64,000 nucleotides of DNA from Mobula birostris (lineage: Eukaryota): contig NC_092380.1 of assembly GCF_030028105.1 (NCBI RefSeq), forward strand, positions 70,243,717 to 70,307,716, read 5' to 3'. This document shows, piece by piece, positions 11,975 to 50,741 of the stretch. Below the pieces are notes generated by a model. The model worked only from the letters and a program-made list of their open reading frames with translations. It was not told the origin of the DNA and did no database searches. Within the stretch, counting starts at the first letter, position 1. Every line of letters starts with the position of its first letter. Both the position numbers and the translations under genes were made by a program.

Positions 11975-11999
11975 TTCTGATCCTGATTCTTATTTGCGT

Positions 12000-18038: not shown

Positions 18039-18343
18039 TCAAATTAATATCAAGTCATACTGTTTCATATGTTCTTCCAAATTAAATTCAATTTGAACTT
18101 GGATGTGTTGTTTATCATTTGGTTTTGGTGTATAAGTTAGTTCAGTGGTGAAACCGCTAGCATTTTGAAATGGCTTGTTTGTAACAAACTCCTTTTCATC
18201 AAAAGGATAAGCATCTCTGTACCAGATGATATGAGCCTCCTTGAGGGCACATCCTTTAACATCACAAGAAAGAGTTACTGGTTGACCAATTTTAGGACTT
18301 TTTGAGAGGCACTTTATTTCTGAAACCTTCTCCCATACATCTG
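18039..18343 (-). pseudogene. Terminal Ig-like exon e, open frame ending in TGA
   Basis: ctctttttcag|cag acceptor. xDVWEKVSEIKCLSKSPKIGQPVTLSCDVKGCALKEAHIIWYRDAYPFDEKEFVTNKPFQNASGFTTELTYTPKPNDKQHIQVQIEFNLEEHMKQYDLILI*. Not in the supplied ORF track. Confidence 0.8.
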
Positions 18344-18971
18344 CTGAAAAAGAGAATTTACAATAAATGTGAGAAGCTTAAAGGCATTTCAAAAATAAAG
18401 AACTATGTAAGTCAATATATATCACTGCATTCGCAAAGTCCTTATTTTAATTCTTACAAATTTAAATGTTTACACTAAATCACCATTTGCCACCTGAACT
18501 ACTGCAGTTGGGTGGATATGGAATATCATCCAGATGAAATATTTGCTGTCATGGCATAGAATCATGGAATCATACAGCAGAGGAACAGGGCTTTGTCTCA
18601 ATTCATCAACACTGACCAAGATGCCGGAAGTTAGACACATCTGCCCACATGGAATGTATATCCCTGCAACACTATCCATGTACCTGTTCAAATGTCTTTT
18701 AGATGTTATTATTTTACCTGCTCCAACACTTCCTCTGGCAGCTTATTTGATATACTATGTATCATTCTCTGCCTCAGGTCCCTTCAAAATGTTTCTCCTC
18801 TCACACTTAACTTATACTCCCTAATTTTCAATTCCCTTTGGTGGGAAAAAGATTTGTGCATTCATCTTAACTATGCCTGATATGATATTATACACCTCTA
18901 AGATCACCTCTCAGTCACTGATACTCCAACAATAAAGTGCCAGCCTGCTCACCCTCTCCCTATAACTGACC

Positions 18972-19190
18972 TTATATTTGATACAACTTCCATGATCTGT
19001 TTTTGCTGGTGTAAACTTTATGCTTGTAATTGTAATCTTCTGCAATCTCACGATGACCTGTTTATCCATCATTCCACTTTTATACCATGTTACTTTGATT
19101 TTCGCAGGAACATAGCTCTTCAATTAGATGCTAAATATGTTGTATGCTATTTCGCTTGAAGTAGTTCTGGGTCACTTTTAATATCAGATT
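18972..19190 (-). pseudogene. Degenerate Ig C1-like fragment d
   Basis: SDIKSDPELL...SYVPAKIKVTWYK...TSIKFTPAKTDHG resembles exons a-c. Broken frames and no clean acceptor; flanked by CR1 pieces. Confidence 0.55.
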
Positions 19191-20103
19191 TCTCATCTCA
19201 ACTTAAACCAATGGTCTCTAGTTTTTCCATTCCCTTTGATGGGAAAAAAGATACATGCATTCATCCTGACTGTGCCCCATATGATATTATACACCTCTAG
19301 GATCACCTCTCAGCCTCCGATACTCCAACAAATAAAGTCCTAGCCTGCTCAGCCTCTCCCTATAACTCACCCCCTTGAGTCCTGGCAACATTCTCATAAA
19401 TCTGCTTTGCGCTCTTTCCAGGCAATGATATCTTTATACGAAAAATATCACATCCACTCTAAACACACTCATCTGGGCTATGCTTCTCCTTTCTAGCTAT
19501 TCTCAACACAGTGGCTCACATGCTAGTTTACTCGTCTTGACTTGTCAGCATTTCAGGATCTGAACCACACTCATTCCCTCCATCCCATTCACTAGAGAAG
19601 AGACGTACAGCAATAAAGGAGTTTAGTTGTTAATGCAGATGTCATGAATACATATCAGATGAAAGTGTGGGATGCATTCTTGGCAAGATTCTTTACAACA
19701 GAGTCAGTATTCATTGCCTTGTGGAAGAGAAGGGAAGTGATCTTGTTTTAAAATGAAGGCCTGAAGTGATTACAAGCATGTTCAGGTATGGAAGTTGGCA
19801 CCAGAATCTACCACAAAAAACTTATTCTAGCCATCATCTGAGCAGCCTGCCTGGGATTGGATTTTGACCCTCAAAGATTGCGTCCATATCCATATACATT
19901 TCTGCTTTCTTCAAGCAAAAAACTCACTGAGATGTCTGACAAGATTTCAAGTTGTGAAAATAAAAACTTCGAGTGAAAAGACAATTTTCTGATCCCGTAA
20001 CAAGTGGCCAATCTTAAATTGTTTGTCCAAAGTTAGTTTTTCCAGTTTGGCCAGCCATGGAGCTAGAACTGGAATGTATATCTGAATGAACCTGATAGAT
20101 TAT

Positions 20104-20282
20104 CCATACCACTAACAATAATTTAACAAAAGCTCTTGCATGTATCCATTTATGTTCTCTAATGGCTATTGGAATATTGCAAAATAAAAAGTGTTAACAA
20201 CTAAAACATTTACTCACCCAATTTAACCAATTTACAGCTAGTTTTCTTGGTGTCTGTCATGCTGGAATTCACACGTTAATAA
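20104..20282 (+). repeat. Start of repeat unit 2, paralog of 1-74 plus 1988-2099
   Basis: cataccac...ggctattggaat...cacgttaataa is shared; the L1 is absent here. Confidence 0.9.
20218..20282 (-). pseudogene. 3' remnant of post-TM Ig exon c (copy 2), cut by the Gypsy LTR
   Basis: LLTCEFQH... followed by |gtgagt donor. Matches 2027-2099 except for an 8-bp deletion. Abuts the LTR TG at 20283. Confidence 0.8.
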
Positions 20283-20926
20283 TGTGACGATATCCTGAGT
20301 TATTCATTACGGACTGTGCTTTTAAAAAGAGAGAGAAAGTGTGCAGCTATCCAGCACAAACAACCTGTTCCTGAGAGAGAGAGGGGCGAAGACTGCTCAC
20401 AGTTTGTTTGGGATTTCTACAAGGACACTGCCAGCTTTGGAGTTCTTACAGAGAGAAGGGAGGAGCTACTTGATGGACTGCTGGTGTTCAGCACAACAGC
20501 ATTTAATCTAGCGTAATTGCCAGTTTCACAGGACACACAAACGCAATAAGGTGTGGTGAAGTTACTACTATCCTGTTCAGGTGCCCACAAGTGTGGGACT
20601 GAGGATCGATCGTGAGGGACCGATCTGTGATTATTAGTGCGTGAAAGAGCGACCCTGTGGAGTCTACCCGTGTTTCTAACCTTTGCCTGGGTTGGGAGAC
20701 TATCACTTGAAGACAGGGTTCTTAAGCTGGTCAATTCTGTCTAACTTGGAAGTTTCGGAGGACAACGGGAAGAATCGACGGCATCACTCGGTCAATCTCA
20801 ACACCTCCCTCTCTCCAACGCTACTCAACTCAATACCACAAACTGAACTGATTTCATTTACCCATCACCATAAGACTGTATCCATTTACCTCCTAAGCTT
20901 GAAGAAGCTTGGCTTTTATATATTTC

Positions 20927-21017
<91 letters not shown>

Positions 21018-21102
21018 AATGAGCATTAGTTAACAGCAATACCAGACTCCAAGGTGTTTTCCATTTCTGCTGGTTCTTTAACCCATCACGGGGTACGTAA
21101 CA
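20283..21102 (+). repeat. Gypsy 5' LTR (TG...CA) followed by a tRNA-Pro-like PBS at 21107-21125
   Basis: Starts tgtgacg and ends gtaaca. tggggcctgcatccgggat resembles TGGGGGCTCGTCCGGGAT. Confidence 0.75.
20928..21014. repeat. (CA)n(TA)n microsatellite inside the LTR
   Basis: Direct reading. Confidence 0.97.
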
Positions 21103-23332
21103 AATTTGGGGCCTGCATCCGGGATTTGAACAAATTGTTTGGGGGCTTATTTGAATTGATTGGGGAAAATCCCTTTTGATTTGATTGTGTGGAAAAACAG
21201 CAGAAATGGAGGCTAGTATTGATAAGTTTCTAAGGGAACCAGCCCCTGAAGCGTTGGATGATGCTACGAGGGATATGCTGTTGGGAATCGCTCACAAGTT
21301 CAGGCTTAAGGTGAATACTAGAATGTGAAAGACTCAGATGCAGACGGTAATAGCGGAGTATTTTATAACCTAGGGAAAGCTTAATGAGGATGTGTTGGAA
21401 ATGTTTGCTGAAGGTAAATTTGCTGAGGCGGAGATTCAGCTTCAGTTGGAAAAATTAAAGATGGGCGTGAATTACAATTAAAATGACTCGAGAGAGAGGA
21501 GGCAGACAAACAGAGAGAGGAGGCAGAACGACAGAGGGTGTTTGAGAGGGAGATATTGCAGCAAGGAGGTCAAGTGTCACGCCGAGGTAATGAACAGGCG
21601 GCACCGTTTAATGTTTGCCAAGAAATTAAGTTGGTACCTCCATTTGAGGAAACAGAAGTCGATACATTTTGAAAAAGTTTCCATAAATCTGAAGTGACCA
21701 AGAGATCAGTGGGCTGTCCTGTTACAAAGTGTGCTTAAGGGGAAGGCTCAATGAGTGTATTCGGCGTTGTCTGTTGTAGATGCAAATGATTATGATACAG
21801 TGAAAGGTGCTGTACTTATGAGTTGTTTCTGGAGACGTACAGGCAAAGGTTCCAAAATTTGAGGAAGCCTTGGGACCGCATGTCCTTAGAGTTTGCCCAC
21901 GAGATGCAGGTGTACTTTGATCGTTGGTGTACCTCGAAAGGGGCAAGTGAGAATATTGACAACATGGAAGAGTTGATATTGATTGAACAGTTTAAAGGTT
22001 GTGTCCCTGATGGTATAAGGACATATTTAGATGAGAAAGCGGCAGCGACACTGTCAGAGTCTGCTCGGTTAGCAGACGAGTATGCCTTAACTCATAAGGT
22101 TAAGTTTTTTCCAAATAGGACTTACCAAAAGGGTAACAGAGATAACCCACTGGCTAAACCAGAAAGTAAGCTGGGGATTAGTGACAAAAGTAAGGAGGAA
22201 GGAAAGCAGTTGAGGGGAAAATTTCCCAGTTTAACGTATTACTATTGTAAGAAGCCCGGTTATGTGGCAGCTATTTGTTTTGCCTCAAAAAAGGGATAAG
22301 GAAAAAGAAAAGGCGACAACCCCAAATGCTTGTGTTCAGCCGGTTAAGGCACTGCTGAGGAAGAAGGGGTCTGACACCGTTCAAGAGGGACTTGAGCAGT
22401 TTATTTCAAATGGATGTGTGTCTGTGAAGGAGGGGTCAACCCCGGTTCCAGTGAGAATCTGGCGAGATACTGGGGCTTTTCAGTCACTGATATTAAAGAA
22501 TGTTTTGGAATTCGGTGCTGAGACAGAGACTGGTGAAGTGAATATTATCAAAGGTATTGGAAAGGGGACTGGGACTGAGACTGTACCTTTGCATAACATA
22601 GTTTTGAAATGTGACTTGGTACCAAGGCCAGTCATGATAGGGGTATGATCTGAATTACCGATAGATAATGTTGATGTATTACTCGGCAATGACCTTGCAG
22701 GTGGGGATGTTTATCCAGCAGTTCAGCTAATGAGCAAGCCTGCTGCTGCTGAAGACTCACCCATGGATACTGATGTTTACCCCACATGGGCAGTAACTTA
22801 AAGCATGTCTAAAATGTCTGCTGATGCCCATTATGATTTATCAGAGACTTTTCTACCTTCCCTATTCCAATAGGACTTAGAAGGTAGTAAGGCTCATGAG
22901 AAATGCTTGTCCTTATCTAGAAAGGAATTTATAAAGGAACAGAATCGAGATCCTGAAATTCTGGCTTTAAAGGAGACAGCCCTCTCTGATGATGAAATTC
23001 AGAAAGAGTCAGTGGGATACCACCTTAAAGATGGGGTGTTAATGAGGAAGTGGAGACCAAACACTGTGCCCGCAAGTGAGGATTGGGCTATTGTGCACCA
23101 GGTAGTGGTTCCAAAAGTTTACAAAGCTGAAATTTTAAACCTGGCCCATAATATCCCTTTAGGTGGACCTTTTGGGATAAAGAAGACAGTTCACAGGATT
23201 ATGAGGGAATTTTATTGGCCCAACGTGAGGAAAGATACTGTGAATTATTGCAAAATTTGCCATACATGCCAGGTGGTGGCAAAACCTAACCAGGCCATCC
23301 CAAAAGCTCCACTTCAGCCAATACCTGCTTTT

Positions 23333-26319
23333 AAACAATAGACAATAGACAATAGGTGCAGGAGTAGGCCATTCGGCCCTTCGAGCCAGCACTGCCATTC
23401 ACTGTGATCATGGCTGATCATCCACTGTCAGTATCCAGTACCTGCCTTATCCCCATAACCTATGATTCTGCAATCTTTAAGAGCTCTATCCATCTCTTTC
23501 TTGAAAGCATCCAGAGACTTGGCCTCCACAGCCTTCTGGGGCAGAGCATTCCATACATCCACCACTCTCTGGGTGAAAAAGTTTTTCCTCAACTCTGTTC
23601 TAAATGGCCTACCCTTAATTCTTAAACTGTGGCCTCTGGTTCTGGACTCACCCATCAGCGGGAACATGCTTCTTGCCTCCAGCATGTCCAATCCCTTAAT
23701 AATCTTATATATTTCAATAAGATCCCCTCTCAGCCTTCTAAATTCCAGAGTATACAAGCCCAGTCGCTCCAATCTTTCAACATATGACAGTCCTGCCATC
23801 CCGGGAATTAACCTTGTGAACCTACACTGCACTCCCTCAATAGCAAGAATGTCCTTCCTCAAATCTGGAGACCAAAACTGCACACAGTACTCCAGGTGTG
23901 GTCTCACCAGGGCCCTGTACAGCTGCAGAAGGACCTCTTTGCTCTTATACTCAATTCTCCTTGTTATGAAGGCCAGCGTGCCATTAGCTTTTTTCACTGC
24001 CTGCTGTACTTGCATGCTTGTTTTCAGTGACTGATGTACAAGAACACCTAGATCTCGTTGTGTTTCCCCTTTTCCTAACTTGACTCCATTTAGATAATAA
24101 TCTGCCTTCCCGTTCTTACCACCAAAGTGGATAACTTCACATTTATCCACATTAAACTGCATCTGCCATGCATCTGCCCACCCACCCAGCCTGTCCAAGT
24201 CACCCTGCATTCTCATAACATCCTCCTCACATTTCACACTGCCTCCCAGCTTTGTGTCATCGGCAAATTTGCTAATGTTACTTTTAATTCCCTCATCTAA
24301 ATCATTAATATATATTGTAAACAGCTGTGGTCCCAGCACTGAACCCTGCGGTACCCCACTGGTCACCGCCTGCCATTCCGAAAGGGACCCATTAATCGCT
24401 ACTCTTTGTTTCCTGTCAGCCAGCCAATTTTCAATCCACGTCAGTACTCTGCCCCCAATACCATGTGCCCTAATTTTGCCCACTAATCTCCTATGTGGGA
24501 CTTTATCGAAGGCTTTCTGAAAGTCCAGGTACACTACATCCACTGGCTCTCCCTTGTCCATTTTCATAGTTACATCCTCAAAAAATTCCAGAAGATTAAT
24601 CAAGCATGATTTTTCCTTCGTAAATCCATGCTGACTTGAACCAATCCTGTTACTACTATCCAGATGTGTTGTAATTTCATCTTTTATAATTGACTCCAGC
24701 ATCTTTCCCACCACTGACGGCAGGCTAACTGGTCTATAATTCCCTGTTATCTCTCTTCCTTCCTTCTTGAAGAGAGGGACAACATTAGCCACCCTCCAAT
24801 CCACAGGAACTGATCCTGAATCTATAGAACATTGGAAAATGATTACCAATGCATCCATGATTTCTGAAGCCACCTCCTTAAGTACCCTGGGATGCAGATC
24901 ATCAGGTCCCGGGGACTTATCAGCCTTCAGACCCAACAGCCTATCCAACACCAATTCCTGCCTAATATAGATTTCCTTCAATTCATCCATTACCCTAGGT
25001 CTTTTGGCCATTATTACATCTGGGAGATTGTTAGTGAAGACAGATCCAAAGTACCTGTTCAACTCGTCTGCCATTTCCTTGTTCCCCATAATAAGTTCAC
25101 CCGCTTCTGTCTTCAAGGGCCCAATTTTGGTCTTAATTATTTTTTTCCTTTTCACATACCTAAAGAAGCTTTTACTCTCCTCCTTTATATTCTTGGCTAG
25201 TTTACCTTTGTACCTCATTTTTTCTCCGCGTATTGCCTTTTTAGTTACCTTCTGTTGCTCTTTAAAAGTTTCCCAATCCTCCGGCTTCCCACTCGTCTTT
25301 GCTATGTTATACTTCTCTTTTATTTTTATGCTGTCCATTACTTCCCTTGTCAGCCATGGCCTCCCCTTACTCCCCTTAGGATCTTTCTTCCTCTTTGGAA
25401 CAAACTGATCCTGCACCTTCTGCATTATTCCCAGAAACACTTGCCATTGCTGGTCCACTGTCATCCCTGCTAGGGTATTGTTCCATTGAACTTTGGCCAA
25501 CTCCTCCCTCATAGCACCATAGGTTCCTCTGTTCGACTGTAATACTGATACTTCCGAGTTTCCCTTCTCCCTCTCAAATTGTAGATTAAAACTTATCATA
25601 TTATGGTCACTACCTCCTAATGACCCCTTTACCTCGAGGTCCCTGATCAAATCCGGTTCATTGCACAACACTAAATCTAGAATTGTGTTCTCTCTGGTAG
25701 GCTCCAGTACAAGCTGTTCTAAAAATCCATCTCGGAGGGACTCCACAAACTCCCTTTCTTTGGGTCCAGCACCAACCTGATTCCTCCAGTCTACCTGCAT
25801 GTTGAAGTCCCCCATAACAACTGTAGCATTACCTTTGCGACATGTCAATTTTAACTCTTGATTCAGCTTACACCCTATATCCAGACTACTGTTTGGGGGC
25901 CTGTAGATAACTCCCATTAGGGTCTTTCTACTCTTAGAATTTCTCAGTTCTATCCATACTGACTCTACGTCTCCTGATTCTATGTCCCCCCCCTCGCAAG
26001 GGACTGAATATCATTTCTCACCACAGAGCCACCCCACCCCCTCTGCCCATCAGTCTGTCCTTTCGATAGGATGTATACACTTGAATATTCATTTCCCAGG
26101 CCCTGTCCACTTGAAGCCATGTCTCTGTTATTCCCACAACATCATACTTACCAATTTCCAACTGTGCCTCAAGCTCATCCACTTTATTTCTTATACTCCG
26201 TGCACTCATATACAATACTTTTAATTCATTACCCCCCTGACCTCCCATATCAATTCCTATATCACTTGGCCATACTGTACGATCCCTTCTTGAGCTTTCT
26301 GCTCTGTTGATTCTTGGTA
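23333..26319 (-). mobile_element. CR1 LINE with near-complete ORF2 (APE + RT), nested in the Gypsy integrase
   Basis: 829-aa open frame 23428-25917 (DFQKAFDKV, FADD) and APE N-terminus (GITETWL) at 26018-26319. (CTATTGT)n tail; CTTTT at both junctions splits PAF|GE. Confidence 0.93.
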
Positions 26320-27257
26320 CTTTTGGTGAATCATTTTCCCGAGTCATAGTGGATTGTGTTGGCCCACTGCCAAAACTTGCAGCTGGCCATCAGTATGTGT
26401 TAACTATAATGTGTGCCGTTTCTAGGTTCCCCGAGGCAGTTCCTCTTCGAAATATTAGGGCTAAAATGGTGGTGAAGGCTCTCATCAAGTTTTTGACTAC
26501 GGTTGGTTTGCCCAGAGAAATTCAGTCCAACCAGGGAAGTAACTTTACATTGGGAGTATTCCAGCAAATAGTTTCTGAACTGGGGGCTAAACAAATTGTG
26601 TCATCTGCATACCACCCGGTGTCCCAAGGAGCCTTAGAACGGTTCTATTCCACTCTAAAGACAATGATTAAAACCTACTGTTATGAGAATAACAGGGACT
26701 GGGATGAAGGTATATGCTTACTTCTCTTTGCTGTTTGAGACTCAATTCAAGAATCATTGGGATTTAGTGTGATTGAGCTTGTTTTTGGTCACAGGCCCAG
26801 AGGACCTTTGCTTGCTCAGAGAACAGTGGTCTGATCCGAAGGTATGTGTCAGTGTGCTGGATTATGTTTTGGAGTTTTGAGATAGGCTTAACAAGGCTTG
26901 CGACCCTTGCAAAGCAGAATTTGCAGAACTCTCAAATTAAAATGAAATACTGGTATGATAGGAAAGTGAGGGAACAGGTGTTTTATGTTGGAGATAAAGT
27001 CTTGGTCTTGTTCCTCTTTTTGACCAACCCCCTCCAAGCGCAGTTTCATGGACCATACCAGATAATTAAGAAAATTGACTCTTTGAATTATGTTGTTGAG
27101 ACTCCTGACCAAAGGAAGGCTACTCAAGTGGTACACGTAAACATAATAAAGCCTTATTAATGACCCAAAGAGAGCACCTGTGGGTACTGTTATGAAAATA
27201 AGTGGAGTTGTAGGCCTGTAACAAGGTACAAGATAATTTTAACAAGCTAAGTATAGT

Positions 27258-29319
27258 CTAACCAGAAACAGTACAGAATGGGAATATGCCTTCCACTCCA
27301 CAATCTTGTGCCAATCAAATTTCATCGTCAAATGCCCAACAAAACTAATCCATTGTAACATCATGCCAACCCCTGAAGTCAAGCTTACTGGCCTATAATT
27401 TCACAGTTTTACCTCCCTTCTTTTTAAAGTGTGGAGTGATATTTATGATTTTCCAGCCCTCCAGCACCACTCCAGAAGGGTCTTGCTACAGTGCCCTCCT
27501 CCTTTGCATTTGAATTTTCAAATTGAAACACTTCACATTTGGCCGAAGATAAACTCCATTTGCAACTGATCTATATTCCACTGAATCCTTTGCTAGTCTT
27601 CTATTTTAACCAAAACACTGCCAATCTGCATATCATCTACAAACTTCCTTACCCACCAATCTACATTTTCATCCAGGTCATTTTTGTATTTGGCAAATAA
27701 CAGAGGTCTCTAGTATGGATCCATACGAATACTAGTCACAGACATCCAGCAAGAATAGGTCCTGTCTACTGCTACCCTCTCTCTTCTAGGGGCAAATAAA
27801 TTCAGAATCCAAATGACCAATTCACCATGGATCCCATGTATTTATATCTCTTCAATGAACTTCCTCTGAGGGACCTTATCAAATGTCTAAGTAAAATCCA
27901 TGTAAACAACATCCAAAGCTCTATCTTCATCTTTCACTGAGAGACAATAATTCTAGCCTCAACTACCGCAATGATTTGTGGCCTACCTCTGATTCCTGCA
28001 TTTAGTAAAAATTAGCTTATTTAAAACTATTACCTGCACCTTAACTTTTGTTCCTTCACCAATAATAATTACTTTTCATTTCCAGACAGCAGTGTCATTG
28101 GCAGTCAGGACTTCAGCCACTTAACTTGTATACGTTATGGAACTTGCTTCAGAAGCTTCTAAGGCTCTGTAATACCTTGGTCCCCTACCATTCACCTCAA
28201 AACCTATCAGATTCTTTAGCATATTCTAGTTATGGAACAATTAAGAGCCTTTGGAAGCATTTCTCTGCAACTCACACATTCCAACAGTTCTGTTAATGTA
28301 ATAACAAGGGTGGCAAATGATAAGAAAATCAGAAACACAGCAGAATAAAAGTGAAGTTGAATTTTACATTAAAACAGAGGGCACGCTAAAACATTTGTCA
28401 GAAATAATCAATAAATGAATAACTGATATAATGATTTCATATTTTAATTATTACCAAGTCAATACTTTATCCCTATACCTTCACCGAGATCTTAAGATAT
28501 AGCTTTATGTTTTTGTCAGCACAAACTAGAGGTCATTGCATGTGATTTCTTCCTTAATATCTTAAAACCAATCATACCACAAGAACAATAAATTATTTGA
28601 CTGTAAAACAAAGAATTTGGCATTAGTGCTCAAATTAATATGTTTAAACCTGTAGAAGTTCTTTCTGGGCTGATTCCAAGATAACCTAAATATCGTAGTT
28701 AAAACAATAGTAAAACATGATACGCAAATATGAACTAATACATTCCGACTGTACCTTTTATGCTTAGTGTAACACCCTTCAGTATTTTTGAACCTGTGGA
28801 CAGATGTTCAGCTTCACAAGTATACTCTGTGTCATGGTCTTACTGAATGGTTGGTATAAAAGCAAGAACACTTAAGATACTGTAAGTATGGTCTTCATAT
28901 TTCACTTCATTTAGGGTGTGGGAATATTTGGGAAGGTTTGTTTCGTTCCCAGCAAAAATCCTTGAACTCATGGCACATATTTCACAATTTCTTTCAATTT
29001 GTCATTCTGCTTCTGGTACCAAGTGATAAGCAGTGGTCTTGGTTTAAATCCAGGACAATGCAATCAAATCTTCATGAATGATGCAAGGACGTACTAGAAT
29101 GTCTGTCATCTTCGGTGCAACTTTTTTTTATTGAGAAAAAAAAAGGATAGAATACTTAATGTCGTCAGCACACAACATTGTCTTATTTTGCAAAAGATAA
29201 AATAAACTGAGAGGTTTATTTATTAATTAGATAAATAAACCTTCAGTTTTTTAAAATCTGTTGCAAATAGAGTATAAATAAAAATGCAGCAATTTTAACA
29301 GAAGCTGCACCTTTCTGTT
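27258..29319 (+). repeat. Segmental duplication block A2, paralog of 3488-6031
   Basis: Homology starts at ctaaccagaaacag and ends at ctttctgtt. Confidence 0.93.
28755..29120 (-). pseudogene. Post-TM Ig C1-like exon b (copy 2)
   Basis: aag| acceptor and AAG|GTACAG donor. Motifs GFKPRPLLITWYQ, EDHTYSILSVLAFIPT, DTEYTCEAEH; frameshifts and stops present. Confidence 0.85.
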
Positions 29320-33330: not shown

Positions 33331-33754
33331 TTCCTTCAACTTTCAATGTGATTGTCTTAATAATAGGCTTTCTAAAATTGCTACTATGCAAAACTTGAAG
33401 TTTAAGGACAGCTTCATTATCTCTCTCAGTATCAGGGCAGAAGATAACTTCACACTTCAGACTGGAGGTACCATCACCTGTTGTTTGTGACAGCTGACAT
33501 CTCAAATGCAAAAGCTTCCACTGGACATTCATAATCTTAAGTAAGTCTCTGCTGATCGATCTCCTCAGGTGCTTTCAAGTTCTCAGACGGAGAAGTCCAC
33601 TGGTAAATGCTATGTTCTGTTCCGCCATTTATTTGTAGAAACCATTGAATAGAAATATTTGAAGATTTATATCCAGATATCTGACAAGTCAGAACAGTTT
33701 CTTCCAAATGTACAATGCGTGAAGGCTGGCTGATATCAGAAACTGTAGGAGGTA
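33331..33754 (-). pseudogene. Post-TM Ig C1-like exon a, frameshifted by a 4-bp duplication
   Basis: tttctag| and |gtaagt; 424 nt = 420 + 4. VPPTVSDISQPSRIVHLEETVLTCQISGYKSSNISIQWF...GDGTSSLKCEVIFCPDTERDNEAVLKLQVLHSSNFRKPIIKTITLKVEG. Confidence 0.85.
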
Positions 33755-37230: not shown

Positions 37231-37908
37231 GTGGTTTTACGGATAGTGGCTAAATCTTGGGCAAATTCATGGCTCTTAAGAAGTATCATAAAGAAGGAAG
37301 GCAAATACATTCAGAGAGCAAATTCCAGAACTGTGTAAACAACAGCCAATGGAGGTAACAAGCTTAAAAGTGACACATAAACCTAACTATACAGCATAAA
37401 ACATAATAGATTTTAATCAACCTTGTTTCTAAAAGGTAAAATAATGAAAACGGGCCAGGAATGTATCCTTTTTATTTCACATGTATTTGTTGTATAGACT
37501 TTGTAGCTTTAAATTGAAATATTCCTAAGTAAACACAAAGTGGCTAATGCACAATACCAAATGTAGTGTTTCATGACATGAAGAAGTCTGAATTTTACTT
37601 TCTAGTAAAAATTATTTTCAGATCAAATTTAATTTAAACTTTAAGATTCTTAATCAAATATACCTATCTTAATAGGTTTCCATGCCTAAATACTGCAAGT
37701 AGTGAAGGAGTAACTGCAATGCCTAGAAGGTGAATTAACGACTCATCACAAAGAAATACATTTTAAACAAATGCTTTCCCAGGGATCAGCTAAGAATTAC
37801 CTGTTCAGTAAGATGCACTTAAGGCAATGTAGTGCATTCGAATAAATGTGTGAGACACAGAAAAGGAGTTAAATATTCATGTTTCTGATGTACTGAAGCA
37901 TATCTTAC

Positions 37909-38025
37909 CTTTTCTGAAATATCGCAGATACATCACAAATCCAATGATCATGATCAGTGAACATATCAGTACACTAGCAAATACACTGCTAGCTATTATT
38001 CCCCCTGGCACAACAACTTCTGGCT
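37909..38025 (-). pseudogene. NCR3LG1-like: Exon 4, transmembrane segment EPEVVVPGGIIASSVFASVLICSLIMIIGFVMYLRYFRK
   Basis: ttttttttacag| and AAG|GTAAGA; 117 nt, open with no stop. About 23 hydrophobic residues followed by basic RYFRK. Confidence 0.88.
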
Positions 38026-39268: not shown

Positions 39269-39567
39269 CTTTTACACTCAGAGTGGTTTCCAACTTTTCA
39301 CCATTACGAAGTGATCTGTGTCTCACAAAGCATATGTAAACATTAGAATTATCTTGGAGCGATGGCCGTAACCTCATACGACTAGAAACACTGTAGGTTC
39401 CATCATTATTTTTAATTGGGGATCCTTTTCTTCTCCATCTCTAGATTTCTTTAACTAGCTCATCTCAATTGCCTTGGGATAAAAACCGGTACTGTCACAG
39501 TTTGCTGATTTTTCAGTACCGTTCTCAATTGTGATGGCAGTTGAAGATAATGTCACAATTGGTTTGG
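39269..39567 (-). pseudogene. NCR3LG1-like: Exon 3, Ig C1-set domain with stop at the Trp codon and a frameshifting deletion
   Basis: tttttacag| and |gtaagt; 299 nt (not a multiple of 3). AKPIVTLSSTAITIENGTEKSANCDSTGFYPKAIEMS*LKK...(frameshift)...PIKNNDGTYSVSSRMRLRPSLQDNSNVYICFVRHRSLRNGEKLETTLSVK. TAG at 39455-39457. Confidence 0.9.
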
Positions 39568-40511: not shown

Positions 40512-41154
40512 CACCTACGCTCTGTCCGCCAGAGAAAGCAGTATCTCCCAGTGGCCACACATTTTAATTCCACATCCCATTCCCATTCTGATATGTCTAT
40601 CCATGGCCTCCTCTACTGTCAAGATGAAGCCACACTCAGGTTGGATGAACAACACGTTATAGTCCATCAGGGTAGCCTCCAACCTGATGGCATGAACACT
40701 GACTTCCCTAGCTTCCATTAATGCCCCACCTCTCCTTCGTACCCGATCCCTTATTTATTTCCCCCTTTTTTCTCTTTTTTTTTCTCCCTCTGTCCCTCTC
40801 ACTATAACTCCTTGCCCATCCTCTGGTGCTCCCCTCCCCCTTTCTTTCTCCCTAGGCCTCCCGTCCCATGATCCTCTCCTTCCCCCAGCCTGGTATCCCT
40901 TTTGCCAATCAACTTTCCAGCTCTCAGCTCCATCCCTCCTCCTCCTGTCTTCTCCTATCATTTTGGATCTCCCCCTCCCCCCCACTTTCAAATCTCTTAT
41001 TAACTCTTCTTTCAGTTAGTCCTGATGAAGGGTCTCAGCCCGAAATGTCGACTGTACCTCTTCCTATAGATGCTGCCTGGCCTGCTGCGTTCAACAGCAT
41101 TTTTTGTGTTTGTTGCTTGAATTTCCAGCGTCTGCAGATTTCCTCGTCTTTGCG
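40512..41154 (+). mobile_element. Penelope-derived element in intron 2, 9-bp TSD
   Basis: tcattacaa at 40503-40511 and 41155-41163; carries the end of the GIY-YIG domain. Confidence 0.75.
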
Positions 41155-41437: not shown

Positions 41438-41794
41438 CTGTAACAGTCATGGAAGATTTTCCTTCTCCATTCTCTGAGTTAATAGAAACAGTGCAGGTAT
41501 AATCTCCTTCTTCATTAATTTGCACAAGTGGAAGAAAAAGAGAAGCAATTTCCTTCTTCAATTCGTTGCCAAATATTTCAGCTCCTTTTCTGTATGGCGA
41601 ATGCTTGCCTCCATTGAACTGTTATACTACTTGTCTGTCAGAAGAGCCAAATTTTTGAAAGAACCACTGAACTCCAACCCTTCTAAGGTTAATTTCACTG
41701 GCCTTGTAACCAGACACACGGCATTTAAGAAAAACATCAATATTCACAAAGGCTTCCACAGTTCTTGAATTCATAGACACTATTAGGACACCTT
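41438..41794 (-). pseudogene. NCR3LG1-like: Exon 2, Ig V-set domain with in-frame TAA at 41622-41624
   Basis: ttattgcag| acceptor and |gtaaga donor; 357 nt. Translation EGVLIVSMNSRTVEAFVNIDVFLKCRVSGYKASEINLRRVGVQWFFQKFGSSDRQVV*QFNGGKHSPYRKGAEIFGNELKKEIASLFLPLVQINEEGDYTCTVSINSENGEGKSSMTVT has canonical C, W and DYTC. Confidence 0.9.
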
Positions 41795-42259: not shown

Positions 42260-45039
42260 TCAAAAATCGACTTATAGATGTTTTTAAAAACAGAATTGAT
42301 TGGTTACCCAGGGGTGTGCTATACTGAGATGTGACATGGGATGTGAATATCAGCAGAAACAATGACAAAATACAAACGGATATGATAAATATCAAAGGGT
42401 CATGGAATCAGAGATATAATGCAGAAACCAGCCCTTACAGCCATCCCCATCTATGCCAACTATGATGCCCATACACATTAATTTTATTTACCTGCATTAG
42501 CCATATGTCCCTCTATGCCTTTCCTACCCAAGAACCTGTGCAAACAACTTTTAAACACTGGAATTGTCTCCACTATCTCCTCAGGCAGTCCATTTTAAAT
42601 AAATACCAGTCTCCATGTGGAAAATCCTCTCTCAAATCTCCCCCTCAACTTAAACTGACAGTACTTCTAGAGTCCCTGTGCCCTTTTCTACAAGGTCACC
42701 TCTTTTTCCTACATTCTAGTGAGAAAAAGCCAATTCCTTTTTACAGCCTACCATTCCATAGAACACCTGGTGAATCACTTCTGTACCTGCTCGATTGTTG
42801 CTCCATCCTTCCTGTAATGAAGTAACCAGAACTGTGTACAATACTGTACTCGAAGTGCAAACTAGCTAATGCTTTGAACAACTGCAGTTTAATGTCCCAA
42901 TTCTTATACTCAACATCTCAGCCTACAAAAGCAGGCGTACTAAATTCCCTTTTTTAATTTCACGTGTATTGTCACTTTCAGGGAGCTAATGGACTTGCAC
43001 ATCAATGTTTCTCCGGCTATCAATGTTCTTTAACTCCCTTTCATTTACTCTGTGTCCACACAGAAGTTGACCTCTTCAAATGTATGATCCTCATGCTTGT
43101 CTGAATTGAAGTCCATCTGTCACATTCCACCCACCTTGCCAGTTGATCCATGTCTCACAACGCAAGATAATAAATCTGGTTTCAACAGCAAGTCTAACTA
43201 TACTATAGGGTCAGACAAGCACTAGAAGAATGGGAACAAAGGATGAAGAGGAAAAAAATAATTTAGCCAGTTAGTGTGCTGCTATGTAACTTCAGATGAC
43301 TATTTCTATCAACATGAGATCAAATCTTTGTATATATCCCAGGTACCTGATACAACACAATATTTCAAATTTATTTGGCCGAAATGTTAAACTGCATTTC
43401 ACTCATTGTTTCACTTTTGGGTAAACAAGTTTGTAGAGCTGAATATGCCCATTTGTCAGCAATTTCACTTCACTGCCTCACATTGGCATCAGATTGCAGT
43501 GAACACATCAAATTTCACAAAAAAATTGTCCACAATTGTTCTTCCAAATCTGAAACCTGCAATTGCTTTCAAACACTTTTCCTATTACTACATGGATATT
43601 TGTTTGTATCCATGTGATCCACAGAAACGACACGTTGACATAAAATCAAAGCTTCATAACAGAGCATCAACATTTAGCGTGTGGCCTTGTGAATCAGCTT
43701 CAGGTACATCGACTTCAACACAGAAACATCTACCTCATAACAATTCCCCAACAACTCATTAATAAGACCAACTCCAGCCATCACTCTCAACCTCACTCCA
43801 CCACCCAAGATGCCAACTGCAACACCCCATAATCATCCAAACATAGCTGTTCCAATGTATTCCCAATTATCTTGAGCCACTCTTGGAATCATAGAGCAAG
43901 GAAACAGGTTTTAGGACCACTGAGTCTGTGATTAACCATTAAGCACACATTGACTCCAATCACATTTGAATCTCTCCACATTCACATTAACACCCCCTCC
44001 CCCCAGATTCTGCAATTCACCTGCACACTAGGGGAAACTTATACTAGCCATTTAACCTATCAATTTACCCATTGTTGGGATGTGGGAGAAAACCAGAGTA
44101 TTCAGGGGAAATTCAGAATATGACGGGAGAATGTGCAAACTCCACAAAGGTAGCACTGGGTATCAGGATTGAATCAGGTGTCTCTGAAGAGCATTCTATT
44201 GGCCATACCACTGGTGTCCATGTCCCTGTGGCAATTTGAATCACCCTGAACTCCAAGTGCCTGAACCTTCTTGGCCAGCCTCCCATGCAGGAACTTGTCA
44301 AAGGTCTTGCAAAAGTCCATGCAGACAATATCCACTCTTTTCCTTCATCCAACGTTCCTGGTAACCTCCTCAGAAATCTTTTTAGGATTAGTTAAACATG
44401 GCTAACAATACACAAGATCATTTTGACTATCCCTAATCAGTTCCTTCTTGACCAGGGCCTCAATATCCCTCAAAAGGCAAGGTTTCCTAAATCTGTTAGT
44501 GATGCATTTTATTCTAACAGAAACATACAATCACTGTACTCTCACAATATTTATATATCCTGCCCTTTATAATACCTTCCAATAATTTACCCACTGCTAC
44601 CCTCAGGCTCACTGGCCTATAATTTCCCAGCTTATTCTTATAGCTGTTCTCGGCAATGGTAAGCACTTAAGGAAAGCAAAGAAAGGAAACAAGGACATGT
44701 TCCCACACATAATGGTTAGATATCACAAGAACAAAAGAGTATAGAAACAAGAGCAGGCCACTCAGCCCTTCAATTTTACCCTGGCATTCAACATGCTCAT
44801 AACTGTTGTATCTCACGCCTAATTTCCTTTTAGGTGCCACTACCCCATAGCCCTCAATCACATGTTCTTTCTAAAATGTTTCCATTTCCTCTTGAAACAC
44901 CCCCAGTGACCTAGCTTCCACAACCCCCTCCTCCCCATCCATTGTCAAATTCAAATTTATTGTCATTCAACCATGCACATGTATATCGCCAAATGACAGA
45001 ACATTCCTCCAGACCAAGGTACACAACACAGTACATACT

Positions 45040-48000
45040 TTATTGTCGCCAAACAACTGATACTAGAACGTACAATTATCACAGCAATATTTGATTCTGC
45101 GCTTCCCACTCCCTGGATTACAAATCGATAGTAAATATTAAAAATTTAAATTATAAATCATAAATAGAAAATAGAAAAATGGAAAGTAAGGTAGTGCAAA
45201 AAAACCAAGAGGCAGGTCTGGATATTTGGAGGGTACGGCCCAGATCTGGGTCAGGATCTGTTCAGCAGTCTTATGACAGTTGGAAAGAAGCTGTTCCCAA
45301 ATCTGGCTGTACGAGTCTTCAAGCTCCTGAGCCTTCTCCTGGAGGGAAGGGGGATGAAAAGTGTGTTGGCTGGGTGGGTCGTGTCCTTGATTATCCTGGC
45401 AGCACTGCTCCGACAGCGTGCGGTGTAAAGTGAGTCTAAGGATGGAAGATTGGTTTGTGTGATGTGCTGCGCCATGTTCACGATCTTCTGCAGCTTCTTT
45501 CGGTCTTGGACAGGACAATTTCCATACCAGCTTGTGATGCACCCTAGAAGAATGCTTTCTATGGTGCATCTATAAAAATTAGTGAGGGTTTTAGGGGACA
45601 GGCCAAATTTCTTTAGTTTTCTCAGGAAGTAAAGGCGCTGGTGGGCCTTCATGGCAGTGAACTCTGCTTGGTTAGACCAAGTCAGGTCATTTGTGATATT
45701 GACCCCGAGGAACTTAAAGCTTTTGACCTGTTCCACTTACGCACCACTAATGTAAATTGGGTCGTGTGGTCCGCTACTCCTTCTGAAGTCAACAACCAAT
45801 TCCTTCTTGCTGATGTTGAGGGATAGGTTATTATCTTCGCACCATGCTATCAGGTTCTTAATTTCCTCTCTGTACTCAAACTCATCATTACCCGAGATAT
45901 GGCCTACAATTGTTGTGTCATCAGCAAACTTATATATTGAGTTTGATGGAAACTTGGCTACGTAATCATGGGTGTACAGTGTGTACAGTAGGGGGCTGAG
46001 TACACAGCCTTGTGTGGGGCACCAGTGCTCAGAGTGATTGTAGAGGAGAACTTGTCCCCTATTTTAGTCATAGTCATAGACATACTTTATTGATCTCCGG
46101 GGAAATTGGTTTTACAGCCTGGGTCCTATCTGTGAGGAAGTTGAAGATCCAGCTGCAGATCTGAGTGCTAAGGCCCAGGTTCTAGAGTTTAGGAATCAGT
46201 TTATTTGGTATGATGGTATTAAAGGCAGAGCTGTAGTCAATGAAAAGGAGCCTTACGTATGCGTCTTTATTCTCCAGGTGTTCTAAGGAGGAATGTAGGG
46301 CCAGAGAGATGGTATCTGCCATTGACCTATTGCTCTGGTAGGCGAATTGCAAAGCGTCGAGGTTGACCGGTAGGCTGTGGTTGATGTGTGCCATAACCAA
46401 TCTTTCGAAGCACTTCATAGCAATTGACGTCAGAGCCACAGGTCGATAGTCATTCAGGCATGCCATCTTGCTCTTCTTCGGCACTGGGATTATCGTTGCC
46501 TTCTTAAAACATGAGGGGATCTTAGACTGAAGCGAGGAGCAGTTGAAGATGTCAGCAAACACTCCAGCTAGCTCGCTTGCACAGGCCCAGAGAACCTATC
46601 CTGGGACACCATCTGGGCCCGTCGCCTTCCTTGGATTTATCTTCAGGAAGGCCCTTCGAACGTCCTCCTCGGTGACGATGAATCTCGATACTACCAGGTC
46701 CGGTTCATCCGGAGGGAGCGGGACGCTCCTCTTCTGTTCGAATCTTGCGTAGAATATGTTCAGTTCGTCAGGAAGAGAAGCACCACAGTTATTAATATTC
46801 CCAGCCTTTTCTTTGTGCCCAGTGATCTCATTTAGACCCTGCCATAGTCTACTGGCATCCCTCTGGTTAGCCTGGGCTTCCAACTTGGCTCGATATTGCC
46901 TCTTGGTGCCCTTAATGGCTTTCCGGAGTTCACGCCTGGATTCCGTGTAACGACTGGTATCCCCGGACCTAAAAGCCGCTGCTCTAGCCTTTAAAAGGGA
47001 CTTGACCTCATAATTCATCCAAGGTTTCTGGTTAGGGAATACCCGGATCGTCTTGCGAGACACACAGTCCTCCGTGCGTTTCCAAATAAAGTCTGTGACA
47101 GCTGAGGCATCCTCATCGAGGTTAGCTGCCGAGTCCTTAAATACTAACCGATTCAAAGCAGTCACAAAGGACCTCACCTGTTTCCTCCGTCCAATTCGAC
47201 ACTACTTTTGACACTGTGACCTCCCGCTTCAGTTTCTGTTTGTAAGCCGGGAGGCGGAGTACGGCCTGATGGTCCGATTTTCTGAAGTGAGGTCGTGGGA
47301 CGGAACGGTAGGCATCCTTGACTGCTGTGTAGCAGTGGTCAAGTATATCTGGGCCTTTAGTGCGGCAGGAGACATGTTGGTATAACTTTGGCAGCGCCTT
47401 TCTGAGGTTGGCCTGGTTAAAGTCCCCGGCTGTAATGAGCAAAGCCTCCGGATACCTGGTCTCAAGTTCACTGATGTTGGCATACAGTATGTTCAGAGCA
47501 CACTCCACATCCACCTGGGGGGGAATGTAAACCGCTGTCAGTATGACCGAGGTGAATTCCCGTGGCAGATAGTAGGGACGACACTTCACCGACAGGTGTT
47601 CCAGGTCCGGGCTGCAGGAGCTTGTCAGTGCCACTGTTTCCAAGCACCACGCAGTGTTGATCAGTGGGCAGACACCACCTCCCCTCGTCTTGCCCAAAGA
47701 CTCCGTGCGGTCCATCCGATGGATCAAAAATCCCTCTGGTTGGATGGCACAGTCGGCAGTGGCGGGGCAGAGCCAGGTCTTGGTAAAACAGAATTCACAG
47801 CAGTTCTGCATCTCCCTGCAGTAGGTGAGTCTCCCTTTAAGATCATCCACCTTGTTCTCTATGGCTTGCACATTAGCTAGTAGGATGGTGGGCATAGGGA
47901 CCCTGAAGCCCCTCAGTTTCAATCTGCCCAGCAGCCCAGCTCTTTTCCCACGCTTCCTCGGTAAATAGTGCATCTTTCCAGGTTTCCATCGATGCAGTGT

Positions 48001-48693
48001 GTTGTTGTCAGCTCTTTGAGGTTGGTGGATGCATCCCGTGGGGATTGATCGGCGGGTCGCTTCGTCAGGCCCTCCGGGTCGGGCCAAGTGACGGGGGAGG
48101 CTCCGCTGCCACTTCCAGCTGCCGGGGGCCCCGGCTGTCGATTGGGTCAGGCCCCGAAGCCGACACTTAATCCCAGAGGGCCGTGCTCCTGGCTGAAACA
48201 AGTCCGTAAACCAAGTCACGGTTGCGGAGGCCTCTGCTCCAGCCAAGCCTCGGGCTCGATTTCCGAGGTCGGTGGCGGAGGCCTCATTTCCGGCAGCTGT
48301 GAATGTCCACCAACGGGGCTTTATGGTGGTCACTCCAGGGAAGCATCTGGGGCACCTTTAGGTCTCCGCCGTCACTTCTGTGTAGTCGTCTGCTCCAGAG
48401 AGGTGCTGGTTGGAATGGGCCGTGTCTCCAAGCGCTCCGGCATGGTAACAGACTGCGGGTCTCCGGGAACGTGGTGGGCCTCACAGGTCGGGTCCAGGTG
48501 CGGTCCGGAGTTTAAGAAGCAATTCTGGCGCAGTGGTCTCCAGCTGGGTCAGTAGCTTCGCCAGGGTATTGCTGATCTTGCTAGATGTAGCAGATTGGAG
48601 GTTTAGAAGGGTTTCTCGGGTATAGGATAGTGGAGAAGGCGGTTTGCTCGGGAGAGCACGTGCAGAGTCGCCAGTTACCAGCGCCATCTTGAT
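45040..48693 (-). mobile_element. Near-full-length Rex-Babar LINE (APE + RT, frameshifted)
   Basis: 5' AAGATGGCG start; APE motifs (LLANVQ, YIPP, AGDFNQ, SDH); RT motifs ([26 protein letters not shown]); 3'UTR. Confidence 0.9.
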
Positions 48694-48974
48694 CACTCAT
48701 TTTATATATGTATGTGTGTATATAAAACACAAAGTAATATTACCACAAGTAAATTAACAAATAATAAGATGCATACCACTTTAAACTAGCCTACTTTTTC
48801 TCTTTCCCAGTTGTGACAAATGACCTTTGACCTAAACATTAATGCTTCCTCTTTACGCAGCTATTGAGAATAATTTTACTATTTTCTGTTTTTATTCTAT
48901 TACACCATACATTCTTAAAAGGCTTGTCTCATGCTTGCATGTAGTAAGAGACATGTTTGGCAATGCAGCCAGAC

Positions 48975-49772
48975 TCCTGAACACAAACACAAAATAATCT
49001 GCAGATGCTGGGATCAAAGCAACACTCACAACACGCTGGAGGAACTCAGCAGGTCAGGCAGCATCAGTGGAAACGATGAGTTGACGTTTCGGGCCGGAAC
49101 CCCTCATCAGGACTGAAGAGGGAAGGGGCAGAGGCCCTATAAAGAAGGTGAGGGGAGGGTGGAAAGGAGAAGGCTGGTAGATTCCAGGTGAAAAACCAGT
49201 AAGGGGAAAGATAAAGGGATGGGGGAGGGGAAGCAAGGAGGTGATAGGCAGGAAAGTTGAAGAAGGAATAGGGGAAAACACAATGGGCAGTAGAAGGAGG
49301 CGGAACCATGAGGGAGGTGATGGGCAGCTGGGGAGGGGGCAGAGTGAAGTAGGGATAGGGGAAGGGAGAGGGGAGGGAATTACTGGAAGTTGGAGAATTC
49401 TATGTTCATACCAAGGGGCTGGAGATGACCTAGATGGTATATGAGGTGTTGCTCCTCCAACCTGAGTTTAGCCTCATCATGGCAGTAGAGGAGGCCATGT
49501 ATGGACATATCTGAATGGGAATGGGAAGCAGAGTTGAAGTGGGTGGCTACCGGGAGATCTTGTCTGTTGCGGCGGACAGAGCGGAGGTGCTCTACGAAAC
49601 GGTCTCCCAATCTGTGTCGGGTTTCACCGATGTAGAGGAGGCCGCACCAGGAGCACCGAATGCAATAGATGACCCCAACAGACTCACAAGTGCGGTGTTG
49701 CCTCACCTGGAAGGACTGTTTGGGGCCCTGAATGGTGGCAAGAGAGGGGGTGTAGGGCCAGGTGTAGCACTT
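48975..49772 (-). mobile_element. Penelope-like element 3' part with GIY-YIG endonuclease
   Basis: VIYCIRCSWCGLLYIGET...EHLRSV...HFN...GMN in ORF 49380-49706. Confidence 0.88.
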
Positions 49773-50665
49773 ACACTTCTGAACACAAAACAGATAGATT
49801 TGAGGAACTCCAAAGAGAGGGATAGAGGGAGAGAAAGAGACTAATATTTGGTATCGCTATATTGTTCCAAGTCTCCAGCACAAATCTCATCTGATATACT
49901 CATTCAATTTCTAACAATAAACTAGAAAAAAAATGACATTGCCTTGGGAGGTATAGTACCAATAACCCAAATATTTTGCTTCTAGCTCACGTTACAGAAG
50001 TGATGCAGTACAGGTTCTTCTAAACACTACAGGCCATTCCTGGGTAACAAAACAAGTTCCATTTTTATGCATGTCCTTAAGTCGACTTTGTCCATAAATC
50101 AGAAAATACACAAAAGTCACTTGATGTGCTAATCATACATCCACAGTATCATAATGAATGGCATCAAAACCACATAAGAATGATAAGAAGGAATAATTAT
50201 TAAAAGATGAGAGCGAAGAAACTAGTTTTGCCATCCATAGGAATATGTATTCAGATATGTTAGGAGACTTTTGGATTTAAAATTATGGAAGTCAATCATA
50301 CAAGGGGGTGTTGTGGATAGTCTGGAGGATTGTCAGATGTTACAGCGTGACATTGATAGGATGCAGAGCTGGGCTAAGAAGTGACTTCAATCCAGAGAAG
50401 TGTGAAGTGGTTCATTTTGGAAGGCTTCATGGTCAAGGTAGTCTTTATCGGGGTAATCCAAGTGCCCCAATTTGACTGCTACTTTTGTCCCTTATTTGGG
50501 AGTGAGAAAGTTGGCAACGAATGAGCAAATAATTTGTGATTTAGTGGGAGATTCACTTTGCCCTAATCGTGCCTGTAAGTCCCAGAAGTCCATGCAGCAG
50601 CCTCGGCATAACCCTCAACCCCGAAGCCTGAATCACTGGATCAGAGCCCCCGTCCCTCGTTTTAC

Positions 50666-50741
50666 CTGAAAGTCGGAGCAGAGCCAAGAGCGTGACCACC
50701 CGGGGTACGAGGCGCGGCGAAAGTTCCCCGGCGCAGGCCAT
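50666..50741 (-). pseudogene. NCR3LG1-like: Exon 1, signal peptide MACAGELSPRLVPRVVTLLALLRLS(E)
   Basis: Strong Kozak gaggccATGG, hydrophobic stretch and donor CAG|GTAAAA. 76 nt (phase 1) joins the V exon as ...RLS-EGVLIVSM. Lies in a CpG-rich patch. Confidence 0.8.

Follow-up and report, generated by a model that had tools for sequence, protein, structure and literature searches.

We analyzed a stretch of 64,000 nucleotides from Mobula birostris (NC_092380.1), hereafter called the window. Its minus strand carries what is very probably an unprocessed pseudogene of chimeric structure, which belongs to the manta-ray array of B7-H6-like (NCR3LG1-like) genes. The larger part (50741 down to 20219) begins with the leader (SP) exon, ends with a remnant of tail exon c and is a decayed copy of an intact Mobula birostris gene, that of XP_072128565.1 (977 aa). 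The smaller part consists of a fragment of an Ig exon and the terminal Ig exon e (19135-18039). Judged by its similarities, it most likely represents the duplicated 3' end of a neighboring gene subfamily that bears exon e, and it now lies downstream on the same strand. In the intact paralog, the mRNA joins the IgC1 exon to a 117-nt transmembrane (TM) cassette, and this cassette directly to the first Ig exon of the tail.

The initial annotation described SP, V, C1 and TM exons followed on the same strand by further Ig exons, and all of these are indeed present. The SP exon (50666-50741; MACAGELSPRLVPRVVTLLALLRLS) has its ATG at 50741 and a phase-1 donor after 50666, and it matches the N-terminus of P0125. 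It is followed by the IgV exon (41438-41794; 357 nt; 78% identity to P0114), the disrupted IgC1 exon (39269-39567) and the TM exon (37909-38025), which is intact, has phase 1-1 and is 92% identical to the paralog. As annotated, the TM exon is devoid of a stop codon and has a phase-1 donor (G|GTAAGA); the encoded sequence ends in ...YLRYFRK. Tail exons a (33331-33754; phase 1; 92-95% identity to the paralog) and b (28755-29093) code for the first and second C1-set domains past the TM. Only the final ~43 codons of tail exon c are left (20219-20348). Then follow a fragment of a d3-type Ig exon (about 18941-19135), with LINE tail sequences on its flanks, and exon e (18039-18343). The latter contains the TGA (18041-18039) that had been assigned to the last exon, and an AATAAA is found about 75 nt downstream of it, at about 17963. 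Exons V, C1, TM, a, b and c are each 78-100% identical to the intact paralog (tblastn E-values of 1e-15 to 1e-70), and thus they are not chance ORFs. A weak likeness (35% over 37-51 aa) exists between exon a and the V exon and between exon b and the C1 exon.

The proposal that the locus derives from a functional ancestor and is itself dead is supported. The V exon has an in-frame TAA (41624-41622) where the paralog codes for Tyr. In the C1 exon, a Trp codon is replaced by TAG (39457-39455), and a deletion of 22 nt, matching 22 extra letters in the RNA contig of the paralog, causes a frameshift. Exon a has a TAA (33539-33537) and, near 33479, a frameshift of 1 nt. Exon b has several frameshifts and stop codons, with a net loss of 42 nt. 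The three tail exons d1-d3 of the lineage that supplied SP to c are absent from the locus. Altogether, the locus has three nonsense codons, the 22-nt deletion and at least three additional frameshifts; exon c is truncated, and d1-d3 are lost. An intact reading frame of the B7-H6/NCR3LG1 type is thus not found at this locus, and its copy yields no V-C1-TM-poly-Ig protein. When stop-free stretches of at least 60 aa from the window were scanned for Ig signatures, no match was obtained because each Ig exon is broken; the Ig exons were recovered with shorter pieces and by tblastn. It could be argued that the locus still works and that the stop codons and frameshifts reflect assembly errors or a null allele, as the TM and SP exons and all examined splice sites are intact. 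We consider this very unlikely, given the number and variety of the lesions and given that RNA from the sample used for the assembly (X18) shows only the letters of the paralog at sites where the two differ.

According to the initial annotation, a single ancestral gene (SP-V-C1-TM-a-b-(c)-d-e) had a cytoplasmic tail of 550-600 aa that ended at the TGA of exon e. This part of the proposal is not supported for the subfamily to which the exons SP to c belong. In this subfamily, which matches SP to c at 78-100%, the tail consists of six C1-set domains (687 aa) and then ends; P0125-type proteins from four species all terminate in ...LTF after d3 and lack an e domain. Exon e is instead 93-95% identical to the terminal domain of neighboring e-bearing genes (P0134/P0101). 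The d fragment has its best matches within the e-bearing subfamily, with 39% identity to d3 of P0102/P0104 versus 27% to d3 of P0125. An in-window comparison shows that 6226-16857 is a segmental duplicate of 51555-64000 (92-96% identity). Exon e is at the head of this 12-kb block, which was duplicated from DNA downstream of a neighboring gene. A second, deleted pseudogene copy (2028-6084, minus strand) retains an SP' remnant (6084-6030) that adjoins b' (5916-5543), and an interrupted c' (3255-2028). The duplicate, exon e and the SP' remnant together show that exon e belongs to a block composed of a terminal exon, intergenic DNA and the leader of the next gene. The origin of exon e is assigned on the basis of this duplication and of protein similarity. 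The 45-nt micro-exons that precede e in the neighboring gene were not found in the window. As expected for a single gene, the exons share one strand and phase 1 and are correctly ordered, and many homologs from other lineages finish in an e-type domain. Nevertheless, we regard a single ancestral gene as unlikely, because of the tail of the matching subfamily, the relationship of exon e to the other subfamily and its position in the duplicated block. In addition, the RNA contig extends 2311 nt past the TM, which corresponds to 2061 coding nt plus the UTR and leaves no room for exon e.

The initial annotation also suggested a search for RNA reads that span the junction between the TM exon and exon a, as well as for intact paralogs. 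An intact paralog from Mobula birostris is XP_072128565.1, and the junction RNA comes from this expressed paralog (~97% identity). When RNA contigs were compared with a 236-nt stretch enclosing the TM exon, the unmatched contig sequence before 37909 proved to be the beginning of exon a in reverse complement, encoding VPPKVSDISQ as in P0125. The unmatched sequence behind 38027 corresponds to the 3' end of C1. Both junctions (C1-TM and TM-a) are present in four runs from two Mobula species (X19, X27, X12 and X25). The RNA contigs of the paralog (3109-3232 nt) cover C1, TM and a at one depth. It had been argued that the TM exon joins exon a in frame. The phases do agree and the RNA of the paralog confirms the join, but in-frame joining carries no weight alone, since every Ig-superfamily exon at the locus has phase 1-1. 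In exon a of the window, the first residues are VPPT; a VPP(K/T) start after a phase 1-1 TM cassette is thus present here, the family consensus being FKKVPPK.

The exons a to c might instead belong to a second gene in tandem that has a leader of its own, in which case the B7-H6-like gene would stop soon past the TM. The resemblance of a to V and of b to C1 noted above would fit such an arrangement. The probability that it applies is nevertheless close to negligible, given the direct TM-a join in four runs, the single contig depth across C1, TM and a, and an exon order shared by about 30 homologous models. For the paralog, a second V-C1 pair (a and b) of a separate tandem gene was rejected on the basis of the TM-a junction, which contradicts the assignment of the downstream Ig exons to a separate transcript.

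XP_072128565.1 consists of SP, IgV, IgC1, TM and six Ig domains followed by the stop codon. All six tail domains are assigned to the C1-set, with 22-50 bits (gathering cut-off: 21). For the intact paralog, AF2 predicts a TM helix (residues 271-287) and six Ig folds, with a mean pLDDT of 84. With Foldseek, the tail of the whole model gives a generic multi-Ig match, and UrIg2 is among the better PDB matches to the tail. A second TM that would return the Ig domains to the lumen is not found past the first one in about 30 homologs. The flank preceding the TM has a net charge of -0.8 and the one following it a net charge of +2.1, and nearly all homologs retain the TM exon together with this basic flank. 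Between manta and sawfish, the tail is as well conserved as the ectodomain (72-86%). The cysteine pairs of V and C1 are 100% conserved in the family and are also present in the exons of the window, which are broken elsewhere.

With these properties, the TM-containing isoform would be a type I protein with a cleavable SP, an uncharged anchor of 21-32 residues and a positive C-terminal flank. The B7-H6-like V-C1 part would face outward, and the Ig domains past the TM (about 690 aa) would reside in the cytosol. We infer this cytosolic poly-Ig tail by a rule-based prediction, as six C1-set domains are located past the TM, a second TM is lacking and the charges of the flanks fit a type I anchor. 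Skipping of the TM cassette would lead to a fully secreted poly-Ig form. Exon-precise TM-less isoforms are found among NCBI models from Hemitrygon (stingray; minus 38 aa) and Bombina (toad; minus 34 aa), and also in a catshark model.

The tail may therefore have been selected for an extracellular role. The TM would then be a skippable cassette, the TM-less secreted V-C1-(C1)n protein would be the working form, and the TM form would be a tethered variant whose tail simply comes to lie in the cytosol. We consider this possible, albeit not probable. Besides the TM-less models, it would account for tail domains b and c, which have both canonical cysteines in 97-100% of 33 homologs (as does e in most cases); their retention would suit an oxidizing compartment. 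To our knowledge, C1-set domains are otherwise known solely outside the cytosol. On the other hand, tail domains a, d1, d2 and d3, four out of six, are without one canonical cysteine throughout the family. The number of sequons in the tail is at chance level (165 observed versus 152 expected), while the ectodomain has 85 versus 63. The positions of a few tail sequons are partly conserved; on topology, this conservation and the cysteine pattern point partly in opposite directions. The path assembled from each of the five Mobula RNA runs includes the TM exon, with no break at the 3' end of C1, which also argues against a secreted working form, as does the conservation of the TM exon with its basic flank. 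Public RNA runs from Mobula contain the transcript in abundance, the TM-a junction is confirmed and intact cDNAs are now defined, so that the question has become directly testable.

It is about an even call whether the following more general view is correct. The B7-H6 lineage of cartilaginous fish, coelacanth, sturgeon, amphibians and reptiles would comprise type I surface ligands whose cytosolic tail is conserved and contains four to seven C1-set domains, the first such domains to work in the cytosol. The tail would link an NK-cell ligand to intracellular scaffolding or sensing, and TM skipping would act as a switch that releases a secreted poly-Ig form. The window would contain a dead, recombined member of this lineage. 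That the tail functions as a scaffold or sensor, as raised in the initial annotation, is speculation. If the ancestral and widespread form has a folded, conserved C1-set tail of about 700 aa, this would be an exception to the rule that such domains are extracellular. If the long tail is real, the B7-H6 lineage has, outside mammals, another function than the human protein suggests. For annotation, the locus is to be treated as a pseudogene. Its apparent last exons come from another gene lineage, and it is therefore unfit for reconstructing the ancestral tail. In the literature, no published account of Ig domains located past the TM of B7-H6 was found, but an earlier one may exist.

The attribution to B7-H6 is upheld for the intact paralog. 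The best PDB sequence match of its ectodomain is human B7-H6/NCR3LG1 (4e-29, versus 3e-22 for CD276), and a fold comparison with human B7-H6 gives a TM-score of 0.87-0.93 at about 2 A and 31% identity. The 61-aa V piece from the window itself places the locus only in the B7 family, because it matches CD276 with 1.5e-6 and NCR3LG1 with 2e-3. The known B7-H6 is a stress ligand of NKp30 and has a short tail. The human protein shares SP, IgV, IgC1 and a single type I TM with the manta family. Its tail, however, is a non-Ig tail of roughly 170-190 aa with signaling motifs, while the manta family has six C1-set Ig domains (and the copy in the window is dead). The V-C1-TM-poly-Ig order, a VPPK-type start of the first tail domain and the lack of a second TM are shared with NCBI-predicted proteins named "natural cytotoxicity triggering receptor 3 ligand 1" or "uncharacterized". 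Such long-tailed database models, for which no published description was found, exist for alligator, lizard, frogs, coelacanth, sturgeon, sharks and rays (e.g., XP_019332669, XP_033026526, XP_053576613, XP_014340773 and XP_072905585). Most of them finish in an e-type domain, often past an acidic/Ser linker, whereas the manta P0125 subfamily stops after d3.

A precedent for the layout is integrin beta4, a type I protein with a long cytoplasmic tail of beta-sandwich modules that are otherwise extracellular. Its modules are FnIII rather than C1-set Ig domains, the sequences are unrelated, and its function as a hemidesmosome scaffold is established. Skipping of an in-frame TM cassette generates secreted forms of CTLA-4, CD86 and the IL-6 receptor (sCTLA-4, soluble CD86 and sIL-6R). 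The TM-less isoforms from Hemitrygon and Bombina follow the same pattern, but the known cases have a short post-TM tail without a string of Ig domains. Tandem duplication of C1-type or V-C exons in immune IgSF genes is also seen in 4Ig-B7-H3 and in shark UrIg2, which has VJ plus nine C1 domains and the TM last (PMC12227049). Unlike in the manta family, all Ig domains of these proteins precede the TM and are extracellular.

The initial annotation had read leader, V, C1 and transmembrane (TM) exons at this B7-H6-like locus, followed by further Ig exons on the same strand, and each of these exons was located on the minus strand by sequence reading. The leader exon (MACAGELSPRLVPRVVTLLALLRLS) starts at 50741 and has a phase-1 donor after 50666. 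It is followed by the IgV exon (41794-41438), the IgC1 exon (39567-39269) and a TM exon of 117 nt (38025-37909; acceptor ...TTACAG/, donor G/GTAAGA), which encodes 31 uncharged residues and then RYFRK, so that the basic end and phase-1 donor described for it are confirmed. The tail consists of Ig exon a (33754-33331, beginning with VPPT), Ig exon b (29093-28755), a short remnant of the third tail exon, c (20348-20219, the last ~43 codons only), part of another Ig exon, the d fragment (about 19135-18941), and the last Ig exon, e (18343-18039), where the series indeed closes with a TGA, with AATAAA ~75 nt downstream. Because all Ig-superfamily exons at the locus are phase 1-1, the in-frame join of TM and exon a is no proof by itself.

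The locus is a dead, recombined copy. The V exon has a TAA at 41624, the C1 exon a TAG at 39457 (Trp to stop) and a 22-nt deletion, and exon a a TAA at 33539 and a 1-nt insertion; exon b has multiple frameshifts and stops. An LTR retroelement (21823-27160, plus strand) sits in the intron that separates b from the c remnant; it has a SCAN-like gag piece, an integrase zinc domain and an rve core, and is interrupted by an inserted near-full-length LINE ORF2 (23431-26010, minus strand; 860 aa stop-free, with endonuclease and RVT_1). A second, fragmented LINE lies in intron 1 (45254-48357, minus strand; GC up to 0.51) and has an endonuclease-like ORF of 406 aa, RT pieces and a C-terminal piece matching the ALKBH8_N model. 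A long (TA)n/(TATA)n microsatellite, the translation of which reads YIYIYI, is found at 20861-21029.

The reading of the exons as the series of one gene holds only in part: they are all present and in order, but the series is chimeric, with exon e and the d fragment coming from an e-bearing neighbouring subfamily. When Mobula proteins were mapped onto the window, V, C1, TM, a, b and c were 78-100% identical to Mobula birostris XP_072128566 and XP_072128565 (P0114 and P0125), and exon e was 93-95% identical to the terminal domain of the different subfamily (P0134-136, P0101). The d fragment has 39% identity to d3 of this subfamily versus 27% to d3 of P0125. The latter is an intact paralogue; in assembly GCA_030028105.1 its gene extends over 47,600 bp. 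The P0125 protein has no e-type domain and closes with ...LTF right after the sixth tail domain, as do the corresponding proteins of M. hypostoma, Pristis and Rhinoraja. No micro-exons of the neighbour's linker were found within the window.

Exon e is the head of a duplicated block, which comprises this terminal exon, the leader of the next gene and the 12 kb of intergenic DNA between them, since 6226-16857 copies 51555-64000 (92-96% identity, offset ~45.3-47.1 kb) and a leader remnant and copies of b and c follow; 3488-6009 likewise corresponds to 27258-29229. In the lower copy, the leader remnant (6084-6030) abuts the copy of b almost directly (b and c copies at 5916-2028), meaning that ~21 kb (V, C1, TM and a) were deleted. 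A second copy of the e-headed block would be expected to begin just past the window end. A repeat of ~630 nt (40515-41144; 50814-51443, inverted; 49363-49583; copies 77-85% identical; translation including SPDEGS.PETST) has one copy that separates the leader from the upstream duplicated block, which accounts for the 640 nt by which the two block copies differ in size. Unequal exchange probably brought the 3' end of a gene with an e exon to a position downstream of a P0125-type gene, which would have lost d1-d3 before the exchange or after it, and both parts would then have decayed.

The poly-Ig tail layout is widespread among non-mammalian vertebrates. In a whole-library HMMER search, exon e matched ~30 proteins of 900-1250 aa, always in the extreme C-terminal domain, from rays, sharks, coelacanth, frogs, alligators and one lizard; a second search added sturgeon, newt and two Mobula species. 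NCBI names the tetrapod members "natural cytotoxicity triggering receptor 3 ligand 1". Each of these proteins has a single segment of strong hydrophobicity, at about residue 230-300, and in all of them the C-terminus is free of such segments. The family is modular: one Mobula gene (P0097/P0141) has six near-identical tandem d1 domains, V-C1 is duplicated ahead of TM in the Amblyraja protein P0003, and in a Hypanus gene (P0144/P0008) TM is followed by just a micro-exon and half an e domain.

Transcript data confirm the poly-Ig tail downstream of the membrane anchor in the intact paralogue. In public RNA runs from M. birostris and a close relative, spliced contigs of 3109-3232 nt cover C1, TM and the start of a at equal depth. 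When reads were mapped to the TM exon by itself, four runs (X19, X27, X12, X25) showed clean junctions. The sequence past 38027 is the 3' end of the C1 exon, and that past 37909 is TACCTCCTAAAGTTTCTGATATCAGCCAGC in reverse complement; these 30 nt match the beginning of exon a except for one change and encode VPPKVSDISQ, identical to P0125. The RNA comes from the intact paralogue and not from the window locus, as contig differences from the window fall where P0125/P0126 differ from it, the 22 nt deleted from the window C1 are present, and these contigs also occur in X18, a run from the sample that was used for the assembly. Contig sequence 3' of TM amounts to 2311 nt, which fits 2061 coding nt and a short UTR. 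The proposed TM-to-exon-a junction thus exists in the family; the data showed no short stop exon joined to TM, no separate leader and no second TM. X12 also contains a 285-nt contig (depth 3.9 versus ~110) that extends from the TM exon past its donor into intronic sequence (37850-37938, one mismatch) and represents unspliced RNA, carried-over DNA or a form that retains the intron; in the last case, the protein would stop 10 codons past RYFRK.

Each of the six P0125 tail domains exceeds the gathering score of Pfam C1-set; for exon e there is a weak generic Ig match. The AlphaFold2 model of P0125 (35-sequence alignment; mean pLDDT 84) has a TM helix at 271-287 and six confident beta-sandwiches, with only the leader, the stalk and a domain-a loop (348-369) poorly predicted. 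V-C1 is nearest to human B7-H6 by sequence (4e-29, then CD276 with 3e-22) and by fold (TM-score 0.87-0.93, ~2 A, 31% identity), and the tail is similar to Ig constant domains, SIRP C1 and shark UrIg2. The tail is under constraint: manta-sawfish identity of its domains (72-86%) equals that of V (74%) and C1 (77%). A fifth cysteine in the ectodomain C1 (P0002 residue 209, motif CTG), present in 91% of homologues and without an obvious partner, may form an interchain disulfide.

We consider it fairly likely that the TM-containing isoform predominates among the transcripts of the Mobula samples and encodes a type I protein with a predicted cytosolic poly-Ig tail. For a cytosolic location speak the cleavable leader, an anchor of 21-32 uncharged residues (Kyte-Doolittle mean 2.1-3.5), the net charge in 35 proteins (-0.8 over the 12 residues preceding the anchor, +2.1 over the 12 that follow) and the absence of a second TM. 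Furthermore, one canonical cysteine is missing family-wide from four of the six tail domains (a, d1 and d2 retain only that of the B-strand, d3 only that of the F-strand), whereas V and C1 have both in 100%, and N-glycosylation sequons are at chance in the tail (165 observed, 152 expected from shuffles; 0.64 per 100 aa) but enriched in the ectodomain (85 versus 63). Against it, or for an additional role outside the cell, speak domains b and c, which have both cysteines in 97-100% of sequences, a few tail sequons common to cartilaginous fishes, and NCBI isoforms of Hemitrygon and Bombina from which precisely the TM exon is missing (38 aa and 34 aa, respectively), as it is from a catshark model. 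Besides the anchored protein, a minor TM-less secreted form is probably present in at least some species.

Soluble forms that arise by TM-exon skipping are common among immune receptors. A literature search, with incomplete coverage of the relevant papers, found no report of Ig domains following the TM in homologues of B7-H6. The human protein has the ectodomain and anchor in common with the manta family, but not the tail. Tandem Ig exon duplication is also known from UrIg2 and 4Ig-B7-H3, but there on the extracellular side, while integrin beta4 is a precedent for beta-sandwich modules within a cytoplasmic tail.
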